From: Macrostomum hystrix
Taxonomy: Eukaryota > Animalia > Platyhelminthes
Reading direction: 5' to 3'
Assembly (NCBI GenBank): GCA_950097015.1
Contig: CATNEN010000003.1
Location: 1,364,001-1,428,000, forward strand
DNA length: 64,000 bases
Every line of letters starts with the position of its first letter. Position 1 is the stretch's first letter. The translations under genes and the position numbers were made by a program. Of this stretch, positions 14,761-26,500 are shown piece after piece. The notes under the pieces were generated by a model that made no database searches, was not told where the DNA came from, and was given only the letters and a program-made list of their open reading frames with translations.

Positions 14761-16248
14761 CCCCTGATTTCCTAAACTCACACAGATTTGGAATTGCTAG
14801 TTACTTAATGCGTAGGCTGCAGTCTAATGTACCGGATGTGCCCGGTGTGTTATGAGTAGGATTCTGGCTATGGACACTCATTCAAGTTCCTAGTACCACT
14901 TTTCTAGGCCCCTATAACGCAAATTCAGGAATCCCCTTGTTTGGCGTGTCTCGATCCATTCTAGCCTAGCCTAGAATGGAATCCTAGAACATCTTTCCGC
15001 TCTGCCGATAGCCATTCCGCAGTTCTGTGGCAAGAGCCTAGACCGTTTCGACCACCGCTACCAAGGCTAGGAGTCAGTTGCGCACCGCACTACTGACGAC
15101 AGTAGGCTGTAGGCCGCAATCCGAACGCTTCCTCACTCCTTAGACCTTTCGCCGGCTTCGAGCATGGCTTGCGGTAGGCACGACAATATGTCCGTGGCCT
15201 ATGGGACGAGTGGGGCTGGCTAGCCTGAGGCCGATGGGACCACTCCAAACCTTCACTGGACCCCCTCCATCCTCTTCCCCCTCTTCTTCCCCTCCCCAGT
15301 GGTAGTCCCGCGGGTAGCTCAGCGGGCAGGTGACCGACTTGTCTTCTCTCGGAGCCTACACAATAATTGGTTTCCGAGGTGGGGTCGTCTGTTCCCTGAC
15401 CAACCATTTCCAATGGTGCCCAGCGGTGGGATTATCTTCTCCCTGAGTTCCAAATTAAATGAGGGCAGGTCAGTGTTTCAATATCCCGCCAAATTAAAGC
15501 CCAACGCAAGCGGAGACCCGGCCGGACGAAGGATAAATCGAGATTCGCACGGAAGACATTTGTTGTCTGACAGATGTCGGAAGTTGACCAACTGGTCGAA
15601 GGCGAGTTCGTACTTCTTTTCGATGGAGCTTGGGCGCACCTCAACGTGCCGAAAATGTCAGATGGTCATGACAATGTCAGTAACTTGTCAGAATCCTGCA
15701 TCATGCCGGGTACATACAGTAAATCTGTTCCGTGAGCCCAAAACCCCTCTGTTAACACGTTTACATGCGTTACTGTCGTCGATTTTGCGTATCACTTTAT
15801 CATTGGCAAAATAGACGCAGTCTTGGCAAAATTGGTCGCTGAAAGTTCAGTGTCTATGGGTTTAACTTCGCAGAAGCGAGAGGGAATTTGAGTGGTTTTC
15901 TTCTAGTCTGGCAAAATTGATTGCCGTTTTGGCAAACTAGGTTGCCAAGCTTGGCCAATATATAAAATCCGATTTCGTCGTTAATGGACGTTTAACCTAC
16001 TACAACTATTTAATGTATCGTTTAACGAGGTTTTTCTTTTTTGTAGAATAACCAACTGTCTATGGTAAACACTTTATTTTACGAGGCTCTAAACCGTTTC
16101 TCAGTCCTCGTTTTGAGGCCTGAGAAACGATTTGAGGACTTAAAGCGCCAGGAAATAGGATGAACACAAAAAAAGAATTCGCGAAACGCGAAAACAAGAA
16201 CAGCAGATGACCGAAAGTTCACGTTATTGAAGGAAAAAAAGTAGATTG

Positions 16249-17676
16249 TCACTCCCATGTGATGGTTACACAGTTCTCCTCTCCGTTCGCCACAATCTTC
16301 ATCTTCTTCGCAGGACGATGGTCTTCAGTTGCAAATAAGGCAGTAATGCTCCCTGTGGCAGTAGCAGCAGATGGGGCCGTAGCATGGGTTGGTAGATTGG
16401 TCAGTGTGGTAGTGGTACCCCCTGCATGGCCTGCGTGCAACGCGTCTGAGATGCGCAGATGGTCAGTACTGTCAAGACGAATATATCGCTCTATAGCACT
16501 GCTTGAATGACCCGTGACCCTAGCAATATCAGCCCGTTCGAAACCAGCCTTTCGTAATTCAGTTGCGCAGGTCTTCCTTAATGATTGATTCGTAAAACGC
16601 ATGCCATTGCCATTGCCAGTACTAGTTAGCTCCTTAACAATGTTGTCAAGAGTGTGACGGCCAAGAGGTACGTTCTGATACCATTTTCCGGCAGCAATGC
16701 TTGTCTCATTGCGATAGTAGCTCAGGAACAAGCTGCTAACATGGCAGTTCTCCGGGCGCTTCTCATTGTACTTCAAGTAAATACAAACAAGACAGCGCTC
16801 GTGTCCAGGTGTATGAAACGCACGCATTTCACGAGGAGGAGTAGGTTTGGCCTTCAAGCCACGATTGTTGGTTTTATTAGCTCTCTGCTCTGTGAAGAGT
16901 AAACATTCTCCAACAGTAGTACTGCTCACAGTGATGTCCTTGTCATGTTGTAACGCATGTAACTCTGTTCCTCCACGTAGAGCAAAGGTCTTGCCGATGT
17001 AATAGATGACGGTAAACATCAGCAGCCGAGGATTAGATGTACCAAGATCTCCGCGCTCCCAGAGTGCCAGCTCAAAATCGTGAGGTATAGGCTCACTTGC
17101 TCGTTGCCCTGGAATATTACCTTCGCGAACGGTTTCCTTCATCGCAGCGTCGAGAGTCGCTCTGGCGTCCGAAAATTGTGGATCTTTCCAGAACGAAAAG
17201 TCCTTCTTTAGAGTAAACGTGACATAGTGCTGCAGCATGGCAAAAATGTCCTTCAGACTTGTCGCATTATACTTGCCACCGTCCTGTTTGCGCACCTCGA
17301 AGAAAAATCGCCTCAGAAGATAGTTCCAATCGCCTCGACTCCATTCTTCGATCTGTTTGGAGACAAGAAGTCCTTTGGCATCGCCATGCAGAATTGCGCT
17401 TTGGCGCTCATTTCGCCACTCGTTGAAAATATTAACGGCCCATTGTTCTTTGCGACGCGTATTGCTCAGAATAGCGGCGGCCAGCTTCGCTTCAATATCA
17501 GCTTCATCTAGCTTAACGAATCGCGTTGAGGATGTAGATGTAGAAGCCGTTTCAGCCCTAATAATAACAGGCCCAATCGAATCTGTTGGTTCTGATGCCC
17601 CAGTTGTTGTTCTATTAGCTGGTTCGAACAACTCATCTAACCAGTCCAACGCTCCAGGTTGACCCAACGGATCCAT
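16249..17676 (-). CDS. Crypton tyrosine recombinase YR1 (DUF3504/ZMYM-like)
   Basis: 475-aa uninterrupted ORF. NT..K..WAVNIFNEW, FFFEVRKQDG..Y...SL, FALRGG.E (Arg), KTNNRG (Lys), NQSLRKT, TGHSS, IERY (Tyr). Confidence 0.9.
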   Translation of the reverse strand: MDPLGQPGALDWLDELFEPANRTTTGASEPTDSIGPVIIRAETASTSTSSTRFVKLDEADIEAKLAAAILSNTRRKEQWAVNIFNEWRNERQSAILHGDAKGLLVSKQIEEWSRGDWNYLLRRFFFEVRKQDGGKYNATSLKDIFAMLQHYVTFTLKKDFSFWKDPQFSDARATLDAAMKETVREGNIPGQRASEPIPHDFELALWERGDLGTSNPRLLMFTVIYYIGKTFALRGGTELHALQHDKDITVSSTTVGECLLFTEQRANKTNNRGLKAKPTPPREMRAFHTPGHERCLVCIYLKYNEKRPENCHVSSLFLSYYRNETSIAAGKWYQNVPLGRHTLDNIVKELTSTGNGNGMRFTNQSLRKTCATELRKAGFERADIARVTGHSSSAIERYIRLDSTDHLRISDALHAGHAGGTTTTLTNLPTHATAPSAATATGSITALFATEDHRPAKKMKIVANGEENCVTITWE

Positions 17677-17789
17677 GTCACTGACGGATTACTGACACTG
17701 AATGAAAAACTATTTCAAAAAGCTTTCTTTCACGAGGCACAAGTCTATACATAAAAGGTATACTTCGTATTATAGTGTTTTAATATATA

Positions 17790-18934
17790 CACTCAGCAAC
17801 ATAGAAAAGTTTCCACCCTCGCGCAAGTTGTACTCGTATATTTAGAGTTTCAAAACCGGTTTTTGTCGCCAGACTTGTGCCATAGACGATTGATGATTTC
17901 GTCAACACGCATTTGGGCCATAGACGCCAGACAAGTCGAAGGAAACATTCGCATGTAGCAGACAGCAGTCAGCTTACACACAGAGCCGGCGGCTCAATAT
18001 GCACAGTACAACTAGGAGGGCGGACCGGCGATTGCTGCGAATGTCGAAGGGAAGCCCCACATTGCCAGCCACCCTGCTACGGCTGATGTGGGCTGAAAGA
18101 AGCTGGCGAGGGGATTTCTGAGCGCCCAAACCATCCGACGACAATAGCGGGAGTCGGGGCTCTGATCCCGTAAGATGCGCAAACGGCCACGCCTGACCCC
18201 AACCCATGTGGCCAGCCGGCAACAATGGGCAATGCAAAGGGTCCAGTGGAGGCAGCAGCAGTGGCGGCGAGTGATTTTCGCGGATGAGAGCCGCTTTCGA
18301 TTGTTCCATGCCGACGGCCGCATTCGAGTGTGGCGCCAGCCACGCCAGGAGATGCTGCCGCAGCACGTGCAAAACTCAGAGAGCTGCAGCTTCTATTCAC
18401 GTGTGGGCAGGCATCACAATGCACGCAAAGACGGAGCTCGTGTTCCTGGGTGCGACTGTGACTGCCGAGTCGTATTTGCCTATTTTTTTGCCAAGCCAAC
18501 CTTCTACAGACGCTGCTGCCCTTCATTGATGCTTCATGTGGTGGCGTGGGGAACAGCGTCCTCCAAGACGACAACGCCCCACCGCATCGCGCAGCCGCTG
18601 TGGTGCATCTGAAGGACTGACTACTTCGGAATCACTGTCTACCGCGAATCACTGTCTACTGCATGGCAACAGCTACCGCAAGATTTTCTGCGACGCCTGG
18701 TTGTGGGTATGCCCGGAGAGTGTGCGCTCTGCTGCACGCACGTGGCTGCTGTACGCGTTACTGACCCTGTTCTGGGCCAGTTGGCACCAGATGCTCGCGT
18801 ACTTTCTTTGCTGTTCGTTTGCTTCGTTCGAATCCGGATTTTATATCTGTCTATGGCTCAAACCACAAATCTCCACCTACCAAAACGTTGACCCATCGTG
18901 CGCTAGGGTGGAAACTTTTCAATGTTGCTGAGTG
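17790..18934 (+). mobile_element. Tc1/mariner element with a frameshifted transposase
   Basis: TIRs CACTCAGCAACAT.GAAAAGTTTCCACCCT at both ends with TA TSDs (17788-89, 18935-36). Transposase fragments RKRPRLT, WRRVIFADESRF, VWAGI, QDDNAPPHR. Confidence 0.92.
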
Positions 18935-19103
18935 TAGGTGATGTTGTATATAGGTTAAATAACATATTACCCTCTAATTTTGTGTTCTATGGTAGAAAGT
19001 CCTCGGACGCTATTCTCAGGCCTCGGCTTCGCCTCGGCCTGATAAATGCATCCTCGGACTTTCTTTTCCATAGAACATAAAATTAGAGGGTAATATAGTA
19101 TAC

Positions 19104-19362
19104 TTAATGGGCGCATTCTGAGCCACGAATCTATCGTCTATGGAAATGCGAAGTCTTGAACCAGTGTGCCATATAATGGTCCCGAAAACGGGGCCCATTA
19201 AACCATATAATGGGCGCCAAACCAAATCGAATTTCATATAAAATAGTGGCTGCTCAATTTGCAGTCTATGGTTAAAAAGTCCTCGGCCACGCTCAATACT
19301 ATTAAACGCAGCCTCAGACTTTCTAACCACAGAATGCCAATTAAGCAGCCACTATCATATAC
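19104..19362. mobile_element. Family I mini-unit 1 (palindromic body plus degenerate hairpin)
   Basis: Body TTAATGGGC...GCCCATTAA; hairpin ATAGTGGCTGC...GCAGCCACTAT 19243-19355; ends CA-TATAC-TTA. Confidence 0.6.
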
Positions 19363-19976
19363 TTAATCCTAAAGCTTGGCCAAAATTTTATCCTAAAGCT
19401 TGGCTAAAATTTTATCCTAAAGCTTGGCCCGGCTCACGAGATTGCGCTACTAAAACCACAAATTCTATATTACCTGTAATATACGAGGCTCGTAGAATCT
19501 GTAATATAGAATCTGTGACTAAAACTGTTTACAGCAACTTTGACCATAGACTATATGTTTCATCGGCCTAGGGCAGAGACTTCTAGAAATAACAACAGTT
19601 GTTGTCAATGACTGGCTTAGTCCAGTTAAATAATAAATACATGGAATTAATCCCCAGCTTGGCACGGCCTATTGGCTACTAATTCTATGTATTTATTATT
19701 TAATCGGCCTAGGCCGTTAAATCATTTAACGGCCTAGGCCGATTAAACATATAGTCTATGGTCACAGTTGCTGTAAGCAGTTTTAGGTTTGCAATCTCGT
19801 GAGCCGGGCCAAGCCTTAGGATTAAATACTATAATACCCCCCTGAAATCGTTGTCTATGGCCTAGGAACGGCTTCGGACTGCGCTTCTGCAGGCCTCGGC
19901 TTCGCCTCGGCCAAGAAACGCGTCCTCAGCCTTTCCTAGGCCAAAGAAACGAAATCAGGGGGGTATTATTCTATAC
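19363..19976. mobile_element. Family I mini-unit 2 (long palindromic body plus hairpin)
   Basis: Body TTAATCCTAA...TTAGGATTAA 19363-19825; hairpin 19831-19969 with core GGCCTCGGCTTCGCCTCGGCC (19892-19912); ends TC-TATAC-TTA. Confidence 0.7.
19457..19517. mobile_element. P-type excision footprint / minimal element
   Basis: 17-bp TIR ends CACA(A/G)ATTCTATATTAC ... GTAATATAGAATCTGTG; 8-bp TSD ACTAAAAC (19449-56, 19518-25); same TIR as 22376-23721. Confidence 0.85.
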
Positions 19977-20251
19977 TTATTCCCCAGTTGGATTGGCCCA
20001 TAGACCAGATAAATGTATTTATTTGGCCGTTGAAATTTATCTGGCCGGGACAGATAAACATTATCTGGTCCGGTGACAATTATCTGGCTTCAACTGTGGA
20101 ATAAATACATTATCACCCACTTGTTTGACTTATCTATGGCCGAAAACGTCTTCGGACATCGTTTCATGGCCTCGGCTTCGCCTCGGCCAATAAACGAGTC
20201 CTCAGCCGTTCCCGGCCAAAATAAATTAAAAAAGTGGGTGATAACTTATAC
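19977..20251. mobile_element. Family I mini-unit 3 (palindromic body plus hairpin)
   Basis: Body TTATTCCCCAGTTG...CAACTGTGGAATAA; hairpin 20110-20244 with core at 20168-20188; ends CT-TATAC-TTA. Confidence 0.7.
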
Positions 20252-20644
20252 TTAATAGCCAATAGGCCGGGCCAAGCTGATTAACTGATTAAATAATCAG
20301 TTAACTTGCATCTTGAAGATACAAATATACGGTGTACTTTTACTTGCTATTGTCAGCGTGTAATCAATGGTTAGGTAACGCACGGCTTTTGAGTGCACCA
20401 ACGAGCAGAGACACGAGTGCGCGAAGCACGAGTGCACGAGTGCTTCGCGCACTCGTGTCTCTGCTCGTTGGTGCACGAGAAAGCCGTGCGTTAACAGCAT
20501 TATCCAATGAGAGGCCGTTTCCGCATCGATCCGTCCTTACTCTTTCGACCATAGACAAGTGCGTTGGCGCACGCCCATGTTTTTGGGCGGTCAGGCTGGC
20601 TTAAGGCGCAAGCCCCAACGCAGTTGAGTAGATAAGATTTCGAC

Positions 20645-21981
20645 ATGATCAACCTAATGCACTGGCCGAATGAGTGCATATCTGGCTTGACCATGGACGA
20701 GATTCGACTCCAGAGGGAGCTCTTCCAGCTGAACGACGTGGTGGAGAAGGAAATGTATGAAGATTTTGAATGTCCCACCCTGGACGAACTCTGTGCGTTA
20801 CTGCCAGACGACTCTACCGCGGATTTGGAGGCAATTGCAGCGCAGCAATACGAGGATACGAAGGTCGTGTCCACCGAGAGACAAGAGGTCGCTGCAGTCG
20901 AACGATTCAAGCAGTTCCTGACGACAAACGCATTTTTGCCTTTCGACATCGATTTGTGCAGTGAGGATGAACTGGCCTGCAAGCTGCGACTGTTTTACGC
21001 CACACTAAGAAAGGAAGACGGTTCTCTGTACGCTCCGACATCTCTGATTTGTGCGAGAGCTGGACTTTTCCGCTACTTTCGCAGGGTTAGGTCTCTGAAC
21101 ATAATCGAGAATGACAAGTTCCACGCAGCCAATCTGGCTTTGAAGGCGGTGGCGCGAATGTTTCTAAAGGCTGGTAGACGGATCAACCATTACGAGGCCA
21201 TCAGTGAGGAAGATGAGGGCAGGTTGGCGCAGTACTTTGACCGTGCGTCGCCGACGACCCTGTTGCACGAGGTATACTTTGTCCTCATCTACTTTTTCGG
21301 CCAGCGTGGGAGAGAATGGTTCCGTGGATTGGATTCGGACAGTCTGGTGTTCGAGGACAATGCCGACTGTGGCACTCTAGTCCGGCTTCGCACAGGGTTG
21401 CAGAAGAATCTGGGACGGGAACTCAATGCCGGAGCCATGAGTGACAACAGAGAGGCGGTGATCAAGGCCACTGGGACGACGCAATGTCCAGTGCAGGCAC
21501 TGCGGCTTTACCTCGAGAAGCGACGGGAGGCTCTGGGTGACGCTGAGACGGAAGGATCTCCGCTGCTTCTGACACCGAAGAAGTCCTCTGCAGCTGGGGG
21601 CCCATGGTACACGAAACAGCCAGTCGGGGTGAATACCGTTGGCGGAATGATGAAGACTATCTCAACGAAAGCTGCCCTGTCAAAGATCTACACGCCGCAC
21701 AATATTCGGCCAACTGTGATTGCGGACCTTCACCAGGCAGGATTCAGGCTGGAGCAAATTTGCAAAATTACTGGCCACAAGGAGGCAAAGACTGTGCAAC
21801 GGTGAGTACCCATATATGACGGGCTTTGCACTAACAAAGTGAACATGTCAACGTCATGAGTAACTACTTTCAATCGCACTTTAGGTACCTCACGCATGGG
21901 AAGCGGAAGGCAACGGACATGGGGAAGATGTCAGACGCTCTATCCGGATCGTTGTACGGGCGTCAACAGCGGGCGTGGTAG
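20645..21981 (+). CDS. Crypton tyrosine recombinase YR2 (KCTD1-like/CryptonA-type); two exons 20645-21801 and 21885-21981
   Basis: FGQRGREW, QKN, HNIRPT, TGHK. Removing the GT-AG intron 21802-21884 restores TVQRYLTHGKRK...MSDAL, aligning with YR3 TVERYLRFGSRR...MSVSL. The expected tail ...FENCTFNLK (to 22241) is in another frame, implying a frameshift near 21960. Confidence 0.88.
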
Positions 21982-24388: not shown

Positions 24389-26500
24389 CATTGTATCACG
24401 CTGGCGCGTGTTAGATGCACGATTTACTGTGCGTCTAATGTAGTTGTCTATGGCAATTTTCTATCTGAGTAAAAACAACAAGCGTGCGTCTAACGCGTGT
24501 AATGCACGGAAAGTGAGTATATTTTAATAAGTATACTTCTGCTACAAGTACAACGAACGAACAACATGGAATTGTGTAAACAAGGTAGACTGTGTAGACG
24601 CCTGACCCAAGTGATTTCCATTTTAAGTCATCGAAAATGCTTTACATCGCTTATTGTGTATTCACATCGTGGACCCCCCGTCCTTTCGGTCCCTACACAG
24701 GCTTTTGTAAATCCCGATTACAGTTACAGTAACAGGAACGGTTAGCAGGTGCACAGACAGGGAAAGCGAATAAAGATGAAGGCGTTCTGCATGTGGAAGT
24801 TCATTGTGGGAAAAGTTCATTGCTATTACTCACTCTAAGAATTGAACGTGCAGTTGTTGACAGTGTTGTAGAAGTTGTAAACCACAGTTGGCTTCTTCTT
24901 GGCGTCATCACTTGGCGTCCCACCAGCAACGTCCGACGTGTCAGAAATAATCAGTGACTGGCTCATGACGGTAGAAGAGTCTTTCATAATCACGTCTTGC
25001 ATGGAATCATCCTTGTGTAGTGCAGAAGCCAAGCTGACCGACATGTCTCGCATTTCACCGTCCCTTCTGGAGCCAAAGCGTAAGTAGCGTTCTACAGTTC
25101 GCGTCTGCTTATGGCCAGTCACTTTGCAGATATCAGACACACTGTAACCTGCGTTAGATAGCTCCTTTATTACCGTGGATCGAATGCAGTGCGCAGTGTA
25201 TGACTTTGATAAATTCGCCTTCTTTGAAATGACGGTCATCAGCTGGCCCAAGGGATTCACACCAATTGCCTTGTTCGGGCAGTACCATGCTCCATTTGCC
25301 CAACCAGTCTTTTTCGGCAGTAAGAAGAAAGGATATCTTTTCACCGTCTCCGAACTGCTTGATGGAATGGATTGCTCACGCTGAGCTAAATAGAGCTTCA
25401 TAGCTTCCACAGGGCAGCGGCTTCTGTCTGGCAACGCACTCATAACAGCTTGCTTGACATCGTCACACGAGTTCCTGGAGAGTTCTTTGCCAACATTCTT
25501 TACTGTTCCAGCAACAAAGCGCACCACTTCAATCCCATCGGAATCCGTCTCGAATCGAAAGGAATCATCGCTCAGTGAACGGATCCACTCGCGACCTCTG
25601 TTTCCAAAGTAGAAAATAATGTTGTAGTGCACTTCATGAAGTAGCACCTCTGGAGATTTCCGATCGAAGTAGTCAGACAGCCTCTTCAGATCAACAGGCT
25701 CGATCGATTGAAAGTGTCGGGCGCGTCCGCCTCGGGCAATGAAGATTCTGCCCATTGACTTCAGTGTCGTATTGGAAGCATAGAATGCGTCGTCAGTTAG
25801 AATATTGATTCGCCTTGTCGACATGAAATGCCGGTAGAGCGCAGCTCGGATGCAAATCAACGTGGCTGGAGCAAAGTATTCGCCATTCCTCTTGCGAAGT
25901 GGCGAAGAAGTCGCCAAATCACGCTGAACTGACGGATGGTTCTCCATGAAGCTCTGCAACTTACCGACATAATATTCGGTAGCCTTTGTCACACTCTTAC
26001 TAGCAGCGGTGTCCTCGATTTCGGAAACGAGCTGTTCCAATTCAAGTAGTTCAGCTTCTTCGTCAGGTATCTTCTTGAAAAGTGCCTCCAGAAGATCCTC
26101 CTCTTCTCGATCAATCGCCGACTCCGGTAGATTATCAGGCTCGTTCAGGATGTCGTCAATCTCATTGGTGGACAAGCCGGAAATCATTTCGTTCGGAAAT
26201 TTGCTCAGATTCAGAAGTCTGACTTTAGTTGGTGGCTCAGCCATATTCTCTCACAAGTGATTTTAATTTAACAGCTTCTTATTCCCTTCTTCGTAACACT
26301 CAATCAACTTGCGTGCCTTTCACGCATTTTGTCTATGGTTAAGACAAAGTCTAACTGAGCGTGCATCTAACGCGCCATCTAAAGTAGTAAGCCAACGTAA
26401 TACAATGCAACTCATACATCGATTTTTTGTGCTTAAATGGTCTATGGCACTCGTGCATCGACCATTTAAGCACGCAAAATCGATGTATGAATCCTACATT
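24389..26500 (-). mobile_element. Crypton-type element 3 (family II): IR-bounded body carrying YR3, plus hairpin
   Basis: Body IR CATTGTATCACG (24389) / CGTAATACAATG (ends ~26407); inner IR TGGCGCG(TG)TTAGATGCACG / CGTGCATCTAACGCGCCA; hairpin 26412-26490; terminal CATT 26497-26500. Confidence 0.7.
24835..26244 (-). CDS. Crypton tyrosine recombinase YR3 (KCTD1-like/CryptonA-type)
   Basis: 469-aa ORF with FGNRGREW, VKN, HCIRST, TGHK, VERY and C-terminal NNCTFN. Clear paralog of YR2 but appears to lack ~12 aa (EL...LR.FY helix) before LRKRNG. Confidence 0.9.
   Translation of the reverse strand: MAEPPTKVRLLNLSKFPNEMISGLSTNEIDDILNEPDNLPESAIDREEEDLLEALFKKIPDEEAELLELEQLVSEIEDTAASKSVTKATEYYVGKLQSFMENHPSVQRDLATSSPLRKRNGEYFAPATLICIRAALYRHFMSTRRINILTDDAFYASNTTLKSMGRIFIARGGRARHFQSIEPVDLKRLSDYFDRKSPEVLLHEVHYNIIFYFGNRGREWIRSLSDDSFRFETDSDGIEVVRFVAGTVKNVGKELSRNSCDDVKQAVMSALPDRSRCPVEAMKLYLAQREQSIPSSSSETVKRYPFFLLPKKTGWANGAWYCPNKAIGVNPLGQLMTVISKKANLSKSYTAHCIRSTVIKELSNAGYSVSDICKVTGHKQTRTVERYLRFGSRRDGEMRDMSVSLASALHKDDSMQDVIMKDSSTVMSQSLIISDTSDVAGGTPSDDAKKKPTVVYNFYNTVNNCTFNS

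Follow-up and report, generated by a model that had tools for sequence, protein, structure and literature searches.

The 64,000-nucleotide stretch of Macrostomum hystrix DNA analyzed here, referred to as the window (G000:C3:1364001-1428000 of an assembly of 220 Mb in 42 contigs), contains what is very probably a pile of nested and head-to-tail insertions of Crypton-type (tyrosine-recombinase) transposons and their short non-coding relatives. In this arrangement, a short element, u2, holds an autonomous Crypton, YR1, which in turn holds a TA-duplicating element; u2 adjoins an inverted body copy, B3', that holds two further short elements, u3c and then u4 (Table 1). An earlier reading of the letters, the original prediction, had described the same region as an integron-like array in which four units of one grammar are stacked at a fixed junction behind the YR1 gene. 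The junction motif, the hairpins, and the intact gene of that grammar are real, but its division into units is partly wrong. The junction motif TATACTTA does occur at 19099, 19358, 19972, and 20247; it is present in 7 copies in the window against 1.0 expected, a count reached in 0 of 100 shuffles, and each of the four stands just after a long inverted repeat (18959-19101, 19237-19361, 19826-19974, and 20105-20249).

The nesting of the Crypton is evident from other copies of u2. Copies at L005, L021 (two), and L024 (loci so named are genomic copies or flanks elsewhere in the same assembly) continue straight from the 15962-15991 segment into the sequence from 19104 onward, so the Crypton was inserted into u2 at GACGT^TTA without duplication. 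The left flanks of the u2 copies vary and end in AT. Contigs from three public runs, X1, X2, and X4 (runs X1-X4 were examined as assembled contigs only), likewise pass directly from 15991 to 19104, leaving out 3112 nt, with 4 nt shared at the joint. Thus the first unit, which had been taken as the base of the array, is itself nested in u2, and its supposed left border TAA-N7-TTA (15982-15994) lies inside the 5' region of u2, where there is no hairpin, and is read as a coincidence. The same unit had been treated as one body; it is a Crypton with its gene, but it also holds a second transposon that had not been separated from it. This nested element (17790-18934) is 1145 bp long, is bounded by 43-nt terminal inverted repeats, and has duplicated a TA at its target; it is missing from the Crypton copy at L021 and from an X1 contig with the joint 17787>18935, in which 1147 nt are skipped with 2 shared nt. 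It is Tc1/mariner-like solely by its TA duplication and inverted ends, and its 145-aa open reading frame (ORF; 18175-18612) has no Pfam match and no transposase match. The same TA-duplicating element is also found in the TA of the terminal TATAC of a u4 copy (L052, G000:C32:1032116-1033337), which indicates that both kinds of transposon invade each other.

The second nest involves u3c and u4. When the two halves of B3' (19363-19646 and 20252-20284) are joined, 157 of 174 positions are identical to the reverse complement of the u3c body, and u3c followed by u4 sits within B3' at GGAA^TTA. An X3 contig joins 19646 to 20252 with 5 shared nt and is without u3c and u4. Because B3' in its inverted form is seemingly single-copy in the genome, this contig may be a true unfilled allele, although a genomic copy elsewhere is possible. 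The third unit of the original prediction is therefore a composite of an inverted body copy split by u3c plus u4, and its palindromic look arises because a direct u3c copy lies inside an inverted relative. The empty sites asked for in that prediction are accordingly represented by other copies of the host repeats and by the one X3 contig.

Table 1. Features of the pile, with positions in the window and the evidence for each.
Feature	Position	Strand	Evidence
u2 5' 30 nt, severed from the rest by the Crypton	15962..15991	+	read-through copies L005, L021 (two), L024
Autonomous Crypton YR1	15992..19103	+	contig joints 15991>19104; copies L021, L023
YR1 recombinase ORF, 475 aa	16249..17676	-	Pfam matches, alignment
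Nested TA-duplicating element, 1145 bp	17790..18934	.	43-nt inverted ends, L021 copy without the element, contig joint
Hairpin 1 and 7-nt tail ending TATAC	18959..19103	+	core at 19019-19039
u2 remainder, hairpin 2 at 19237-19355, ends TATAC	19104..19362	+	genome copies
B3' left half: inverted, hairpin-less body copy, u3c-related	19363..19646	-	identity across join; X3 contig
u3c non-autonomous element, 330 bp, hairpin 19831-19969	19647..19976	+	genome matches; ends from 11 full-length copies
u4 non-autonomous element, 275 bp, hairpin 20110-20244	19977..20251	+	genome copies
B3' right half	20252..20284	-	B3' identity across join; X3 contig joint

The YR1 element consists, in order, of a 5' TTA with an inverted repeat, an antisense recombinase gene, a subterminal inverted repeat with TAA, a hairpin, and a tail ending in TATAC. 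As predicted, the gene is uninterrupted. The protein of 475 aa matches the Pfam families DUF3504 (2.7e-19, above the Pfam cut-off), QRICH1 (2.9e-06), and Phage_integrase (1.8e-05, a weak match just below it). The catalytic set expected of a tyrosine recombinase is R..K..HxxR..H/W..Y. In an alignment of eight sequences (YR1 and seven relatives), R234, K268, R367, and H390 are invariant, and Y398 faces a tyrosine in six of the seven relatives; the ORF of YR2, a relative within the window, stops short of Y398. Comparison with solved structures returned only a spurious match to a repeat protein. The closest named homolog, with 52% identity, is from Macrostomum lignano, and at least 92 related genomic matches fall into several lineages. 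The recombinase is the sole long ORF in 15992-19103 outside the nested TA-duplicating element, with no reverse transcriptase or other transposase. Two further YR1 copies are found at different sites, L021 (99% protein identity) and L023, and the three copies occupy three different AT^TTA-type sites. The 99% identity of the two intact copies is counted as a sign of recent activity. The second intact YR1 (L021, G000:C11:1748728-1754862) has next to it, in inverted orientation, an additional copy of its hairpin and subterminal repeat; this additional copy sits within the hairpin of a u2 element, and the result is a large inverted duplication.

The short elements recur independently of the pile. 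The genome contains 56 exact matches to the 21-nt hairpin core and 34 with one mismatch, and in the flanks of 47 core sites body and hairpin go together. TATAC closes every intact copy, apart from a few that end in ATACAC, and beyond this end the sequence differs from copy to copy. u4 is represented by 57 genome copies of its 5' end and by 30 full-length copies with distinct flanks. u3c has more than 40 genome matches (86-97% identity), most of which cover only the last 330 bp of the predicted third unit, and this defines the canonical u3c as 19647-19976. u2 has at least 12 full-length copies, of about 290 bp over the 259-nt stretch in the window, where hairpin 2 is without some 30 central nt present in the other copies. 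In several u2 copies the match stops at position 195 of the 259-nt query, which is the apex of hairpin 2, and picks up again about 100-270 bp later (for example, G000:C11:1750401-1750932 and G000:C38:20151169-20151530), which represents either an insertion at the hairpin tip or a long-loop variant. At 275-330 bp, the three elements have no long ORF. That the short units are non-coding and that the block is not a tandem duplication had been stated correctly by the original prediction, and its expectation that units should recur in different orders and with different neighbors agrees with L001, L041, and L023.

Each short element can be linked to a Crypton lineage other than YR1. The u4 hairpin is 86% identical to that of a 1.88-kb autonomous family (L007, L019, L022, and L032), and the 5' repeats are alike; copies of this family are 99.5-99.7% identical and are similar to YR1 in having no reverse transcriptase or other transposase. 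The 5' inverted repeat and the hairpin (80%) of u3c resemble those of an autonomous element at L023:93-2086. At L081, a recombinase gene with 44% identity to YR1 stands between the first 148 nt of u2 and a portion of the u2 hairpin, and u2 is therefore an internal-deletion derivative of a Crypton. On sequence comparison, u3c and u4 share ends and hairpins with two further Crypton lineages. Since these parents differ from YR1, YR1 is probably not the enzyme that moves u2, u3c, and u4, and the predicted cassettes of YR1 turn out to be non-coding relatives of three other Crypton lineages. What looked like a solo hairpin cassette in L023 proved to be the 3' portion of a u3c copy into which a Crypton has been inserted, and was discarded.

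All of these elements have a common build: a 5' TTA with an inverted repeat of about 15-20 nt, the body, the partner repeat with TAA, ATAnn, an imperfect hairpin of about 135 nt with the conserved 21-nt core, and nnTATAC. It holds in u2 (the 5' end of which is ATA instead of TTA), u3c, u4, the YR1 Crypton, and the 1.88-kb family. The recombinase gene of the autonomous copies runs antisense to this build, which places the hairpin upstream of where the gene starts. The same build, a 5' terminal inverted repeat with its partner just upstream of a 3' hairpin, is described for Helitron2 elements, which also share the lack of a target duplication and a T at the 5' end (PMC3627910), and a rolling-circle (HUH) enzyme of that kind could in principle move the hairpin-ended units with the recombinase genes as passengers. 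Five recombinase lineages (YR1 and four at 42-52% identity) each have their own hairpin in the same position and orientation, and no Rep/helicase domain is found among the large ORFs of the window. Helitron 3' hairpins are roughly 16-20 nt, far shorter than the 135 nt or so observed here. A rolling-circle origin is thus highly improbable, and movement by tyrosine recombinases is the reading followed below.

The insertion site of these elements has been defined by comparison of filled and unfilled sites, and four such pairs show no target duplication. u3c lies within an inverted u4 at GTAT^TTA, which is the body/hairpin boundary of u4 on the other strand (L011), and u4 lies within u3c at TGTAT^TTA (L040). 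At L036, u3c is inserted at TACT^ATC; the uninterrupted site is present in L059 and nothing is duplicated. The L059 target is without TTA, which assigns the TTA to the element. Among 41 distinct insertions, the target has A at -2 in 33, T at -1 in 38, T at +1 in 28 (A in 8, C in 5), T at +2 in 40, and A at +3 in 35. All 5' ends but one are TTA, and 12 of the 41 right flanks are not. These right flanks and the L059/L036 site rule out the TTA as a 3-bp target duplication of the PIF/Harbinger kind. The bodies were also considered as piggyBac-type TTAA elements, which is ruled out by the flanks of u4 (TTAT...ATAA) and by the asymmetry of the ends. A 7-bp staggered overlap, as in classical recombinase sites, is disfavored because the right junctions always keep TATAC. 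TATAC is found on the left flank only at the stacked junction of the window itself, and there is no mixing of junctions. Independent recurrence, exact TATAC ends, and the absence of the target duplications that DDE-type transposases leave, the last as the original prediction expected, fit recombinase-type site-specific insertion. Site-specific stacking by recombinases is in this way supported by inference.

How often these elements associate with one another was estimated from 38 distinct intact 3' ends, for which the core motif was the sole criterion of choice and whose flanks were compared with six reference elements. The 3' end is followed by the exact 5' end of a reference family in 3 of the 38 and by a 5' end of the same style in another 3; 6 are nested within a known family, and 26 have another flank. 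About one third of the ends therefore adjoin or lie inside another such element, and nesting is as frequent as end-to-end stacking. L036, one of the 26, is also nested. When the three ends of the window are left out, about 10 of 35 are self-associated. Other stacks, with other partners and orders, are found at L001, L018, L023, L031, L041, and L051, such as u3c followed by u3c (L001), u4 followed by u3c (L041), and an autonomous Crypton followed by u3c and another element (L023). The excess of self-targeting looks large, as the families hardly fill more than a few percent of the 220 Mb. For about two thirds of the ends the flank matches none of the six reference elements, and AT^TTA-type sites are used genome-wide.

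These data bear directly on the integron-like platform, in which a resident YR1 integrase would capture circular hairpin cassettes at a fixed adjacent site to build an ordered array. The constant TATAC|TTA junction between head-to-tail units, hairpins that retain their structure while the outer stems diverge, and the occurrence of the units in other orders elsewhere would all be expected of such a system. The YR1 Crypton, however, is itself inside u2, 30 nt from the u2 5' end, and this nesting already contradicts a platform, in which the integrase would stand beside an attI-like site. Moreover, the downstream units have the ends and hairpins of other recombinase lineages and are non-coding, the other copies of YR1 are in different contexts, and the flanks of most sampled ends match no reference element. 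A true platform is accordingly very hard to credit, and the pile of Crypton-type insertions remains the preferred account.

Current thinking on Cryptons (PMC3212892; PMC13465315) is that they move in circular form, with recombination at short stretches of microhomology. For the elements described here, an excised circle would join TATAC to TTA, and the two inverted repeats would then flank the hairpin to form one long palindrome with a 2-nt AC bulge beside the crossover. The recombinase of the element would exchange strands at C^TTA in the circle and T^TTA in the target. Resident copies would be preferred targets since they carry suitable sites: the regenerated AT^TTA at the 5' junction, TATAC^TTA at the 3' junction, and GTAT^TTA at the body/hairpin boundary on the other strand. 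All three junction types have been seen used as targets, which accounts for both stacking and nesting without a platform, and arrays and nests are then by-products of transposition. The T at -1 in 38 of 41 targets would favor entry of a newcomer at the 5' side of a stack, though copy divergence, in families that differ in age, gives no order of arrival.

A related possibility is that stacks arise from recombinase-mediated deletion between a 3' junction and a nearby ^TTA site, with removal of the DNA between them. Such deletion needs only the same ^TTA sites and would explain the hairpin-less inverted body that adjoins u2 at 19362|19363, as well as truncated or chimeric copies such as L005 (the left arm of hairpin 2 with hairpin 3) and L004. 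Other copies or contigs have the flanks of the Crypton in u2, and those of u3c plus u4 in B3', directly joined to each other, which is the mark of insertion, and deletion cannot yield nesting. As a general explanation of the stacks, deletion is therefore improbable; alongside insertion, it may have made some junctions, for example that between u2 and the inverted body.

Several points weigh against the interpretation of the window as a pile of Crypton insertions. The histidine of the HxxR box is replaced by Gln364 in YR1 and most of its close relatives; position 364 is His in the YR2 ORF of the window and in the homolog P0007, and the two near-identical intact YR1 copies suggest that the Gln364 form still works. 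At -1, the stacked junctions carry C, unlike the 38 of 41 targets in which this base is T, and a newcomer may thus enter a stack from either side. The rate of self-targeting is a raw fraction of the sampled ends, and part of it may reflect a transposon-rich compartment. Simple insertion does not account for B3', which is inverted and hairpin-less, or for the junction of B3' with u2, and the contig joints may stem from other genomic copies rather than unfilled alleles. Finally, the circle, its excision, and the activity of the enzyme are inferred from assembled sequence.

The hairpin itself is conserved in structure. The exact 21-nt core is present in three hairpins of the window (19019, 19892, and 20168). 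Hairpin 1 folds with -45.5 kcal/mol on the top strand and -47.7 kcal/mol on the bottom strand, and the fold is kept in eight families at -33 to -59 kcal/mol, while the outer 30 nt of the left arm have a mean identity of 60% between families (43-90%). The two arms within one hairpin are 73-87% alike, and their differences are the same in all families, with CTATGG on the left facing CTTTGG, TTTTGG, or a CTGTGG-type word on the right; the word CYTCRG occurs four times in direct orientation. As a consequence of these fixed differences and of CYTCRG, the bottom strand, which is the sense strand of the recombinase, forms tandem G.A pairs and a GAA loop in GCGAAGC. GCGAAGC is a very stable DNA mini-hairpin. 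A comparison with known RNA families gave nothing above threshold, only generic miRNA-hairpin matches. When the two ends of an element are joined as in a circle and the simulated junction is folded, pairing between the subterminal and the 5' repeat makes the hairpin longer, and the folding energies of three families change from -50.5, -38.6, and -45.5 to -69.3, -56.8, and -56.5 kcal/mol. The geometry is the same in u3c, u4, and YR1: TAA/TTA pairs, a 2-nt AC bulge, ATA/TAT pairs, a 2x2 internal loop, and the main stem. The mapped crossover C^TTA is right at the AC bulge. The core is flipped in 1 of 47 copies (L031); there, at L031:1926-2101, the inversion affects the 21-nt core but not the arms. 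At L024:2577-2777, compared with window 19225-19365, the inner 90 nt or so of the u2 hairpin are inverted and the outer arms are unchanged.

These features raise the possibility, tentative and on balance unlikely, that the palindrome of the joined ends is a eukaryotic counterpart of the integron attC site or of the folded CTX-phage site, recognized in folded or extruded form by the Crypton recombinase. The palindrome would run inverted repeat-TAA-ATAnn-hairpin-nnTATAC-TTA-inverted repeat and would act as a folded single strand or an extruded cruciform. The AC bulge would set the choice of strand, helped on the bottom strand by the tandem G.A mismatches and by the GCGAAGC mini-hairpin. Exchange would involve a single strand, at C^TTA, with the product resolved by replication. 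If true, this would explain the sharp single crossover, the absence of mixed junctions, and the head-to-tail stacking. The strand asymmetry keeps such a reading alive as a possibility, while being no evidence of single-strand recombination.

The surroundings of the pile are transposon-rich. The window contains three Crypton-type recombinase ORFs, at 16249-17676 (-), 20645-21805 (+), and 24835-26244 (-), and reverse-transcriptase ORFs at 36-42 kb. Long palindromes at 20376-20493 and 26331-26447 lie upstream of the gene starts of the second and third recombinases; their sequences are unrelated and without the GGCCTCGGC... core. To the left of the array, 15690-15948 belongs to a separate repeat family without a hairpin, with about 8 genome copies at 88-94% identity; it carries several TTGGCAAAAT-like direct repeats and stops 13 nt before u2. 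The octamer GTCTATGG has 26 sites in the window (416-42949) against 1.4 expected, for example at 15852, 16058, 17880, 17918, 18849, and 19136. It is located in the left arm of most Crypton hairpins and in element bodies, and it occurs three times close to the two ends of the nested TA-duplicating element, which is unrelated. TATGG termini have been reported as common to the CryptonS elements of oomycetes (PMC3212892) and may or may not be related to GTCTATGG. Run X3, labeled "outdoor metagenome", contains contigs 98-99% identical to the YR1 Crypton over window 15400-20700; together with the lone contig without u3c and u4, this points to a close relative of the animal in the sample. A YR1 query against metagenomes returned no relatives.

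Cryptons are the least understood class of eukaryotic DNA transposons, with ends that have been called hard to define, and to our knowledge no recombination site has been characterized for them. In this genome, several young Crypton lineages can be studied with exactly known ends, a target of 5 bp that is defined, and non-autonomous elements that match them. Taken with the conserved strand-asymmetric palindrome at the presumed recombination site, they make the mechanism directly testable with short DNA substrates, and should the hairpin indeed act folded, it would be an attC-like recombination site in an animal. The findings also explain the end-to-end accumulation of such elements, which could be taken for an array of cassettes.

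Among known systems, Helitron2/Helentron elements (PMC3627910) resemble u2, u3c, u4, YR1, and the L019 family in form only, through asymmetric terminal inverted repeats of which the 3' one lies just upstream of the 3' hairpin. Unlike in those elements, the enzyme here is a tyrosine recombinase rather than a Rep/helicase, the hairpin is several times longer, and the 3' end is TATAC. Integron attC arrays share with the elements of the window a tyrosine recombinase and an imperfect palindrome that ends each unit and is conserved more in structure than in sequence. The crossover just before TT (G^TT in integrons, C^TTA here), the unpaired bases beside it in the folded form, and the strand-specific features are also common to both. 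In contrast to integrons, in which the integrase is fixed beside attI with the array starting there, the recombinase gene here is inside a mobile unit that is itself nested, and there is no platform, attI-like site, or promoter. Integron cassettes are mostly promoterless ORFs, each with an attC, whereas u2, u3c, and u4 are dispersed non-coding transposons. The non-autonomous Cryptons CryptonI-1N1_RPro and CryptonA-1N1/1N2_OL (PMC3212892) are, like the short elements here, short, keep the 5' and 3' ends of the parent, and outnumber it. They differ in that three families from three parent lineages occur together here, keep the whole hairpin, and have been inserted repeatedly into the junctions of one another. 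The closest likeness in gene content and insertion is to the animal Cryptons (CryptonA, DUF3504-type; Goodwin 2003; Kojima & Jurka 2011, PMC3212892), which have a single tyrosine-recombinase gene, no reverse transcriptase, and no target duplication, with only short microhomology to the target. Animal Cryptons have been reported to be without terminal repeats of any kind (PMC3212892), whereas the elements of the window have 5' and subterminal inverted repeats, a 3' hairpin of about 135 nt, a fixed TATAC end, and a defined AT^TTA target. The terms "hairpin" and "palindrom" are absent from the text of PMC3212892 and PMC13465315, and a literature search found no description of hairpin-ended Cryptons or of Cryptons in Macrostomum. 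By gene content, the absence of a duplication, and microhomology, the elements of the window are Cryptons, but Cryptons with unusually well-defined, hairpin-bearing ends.

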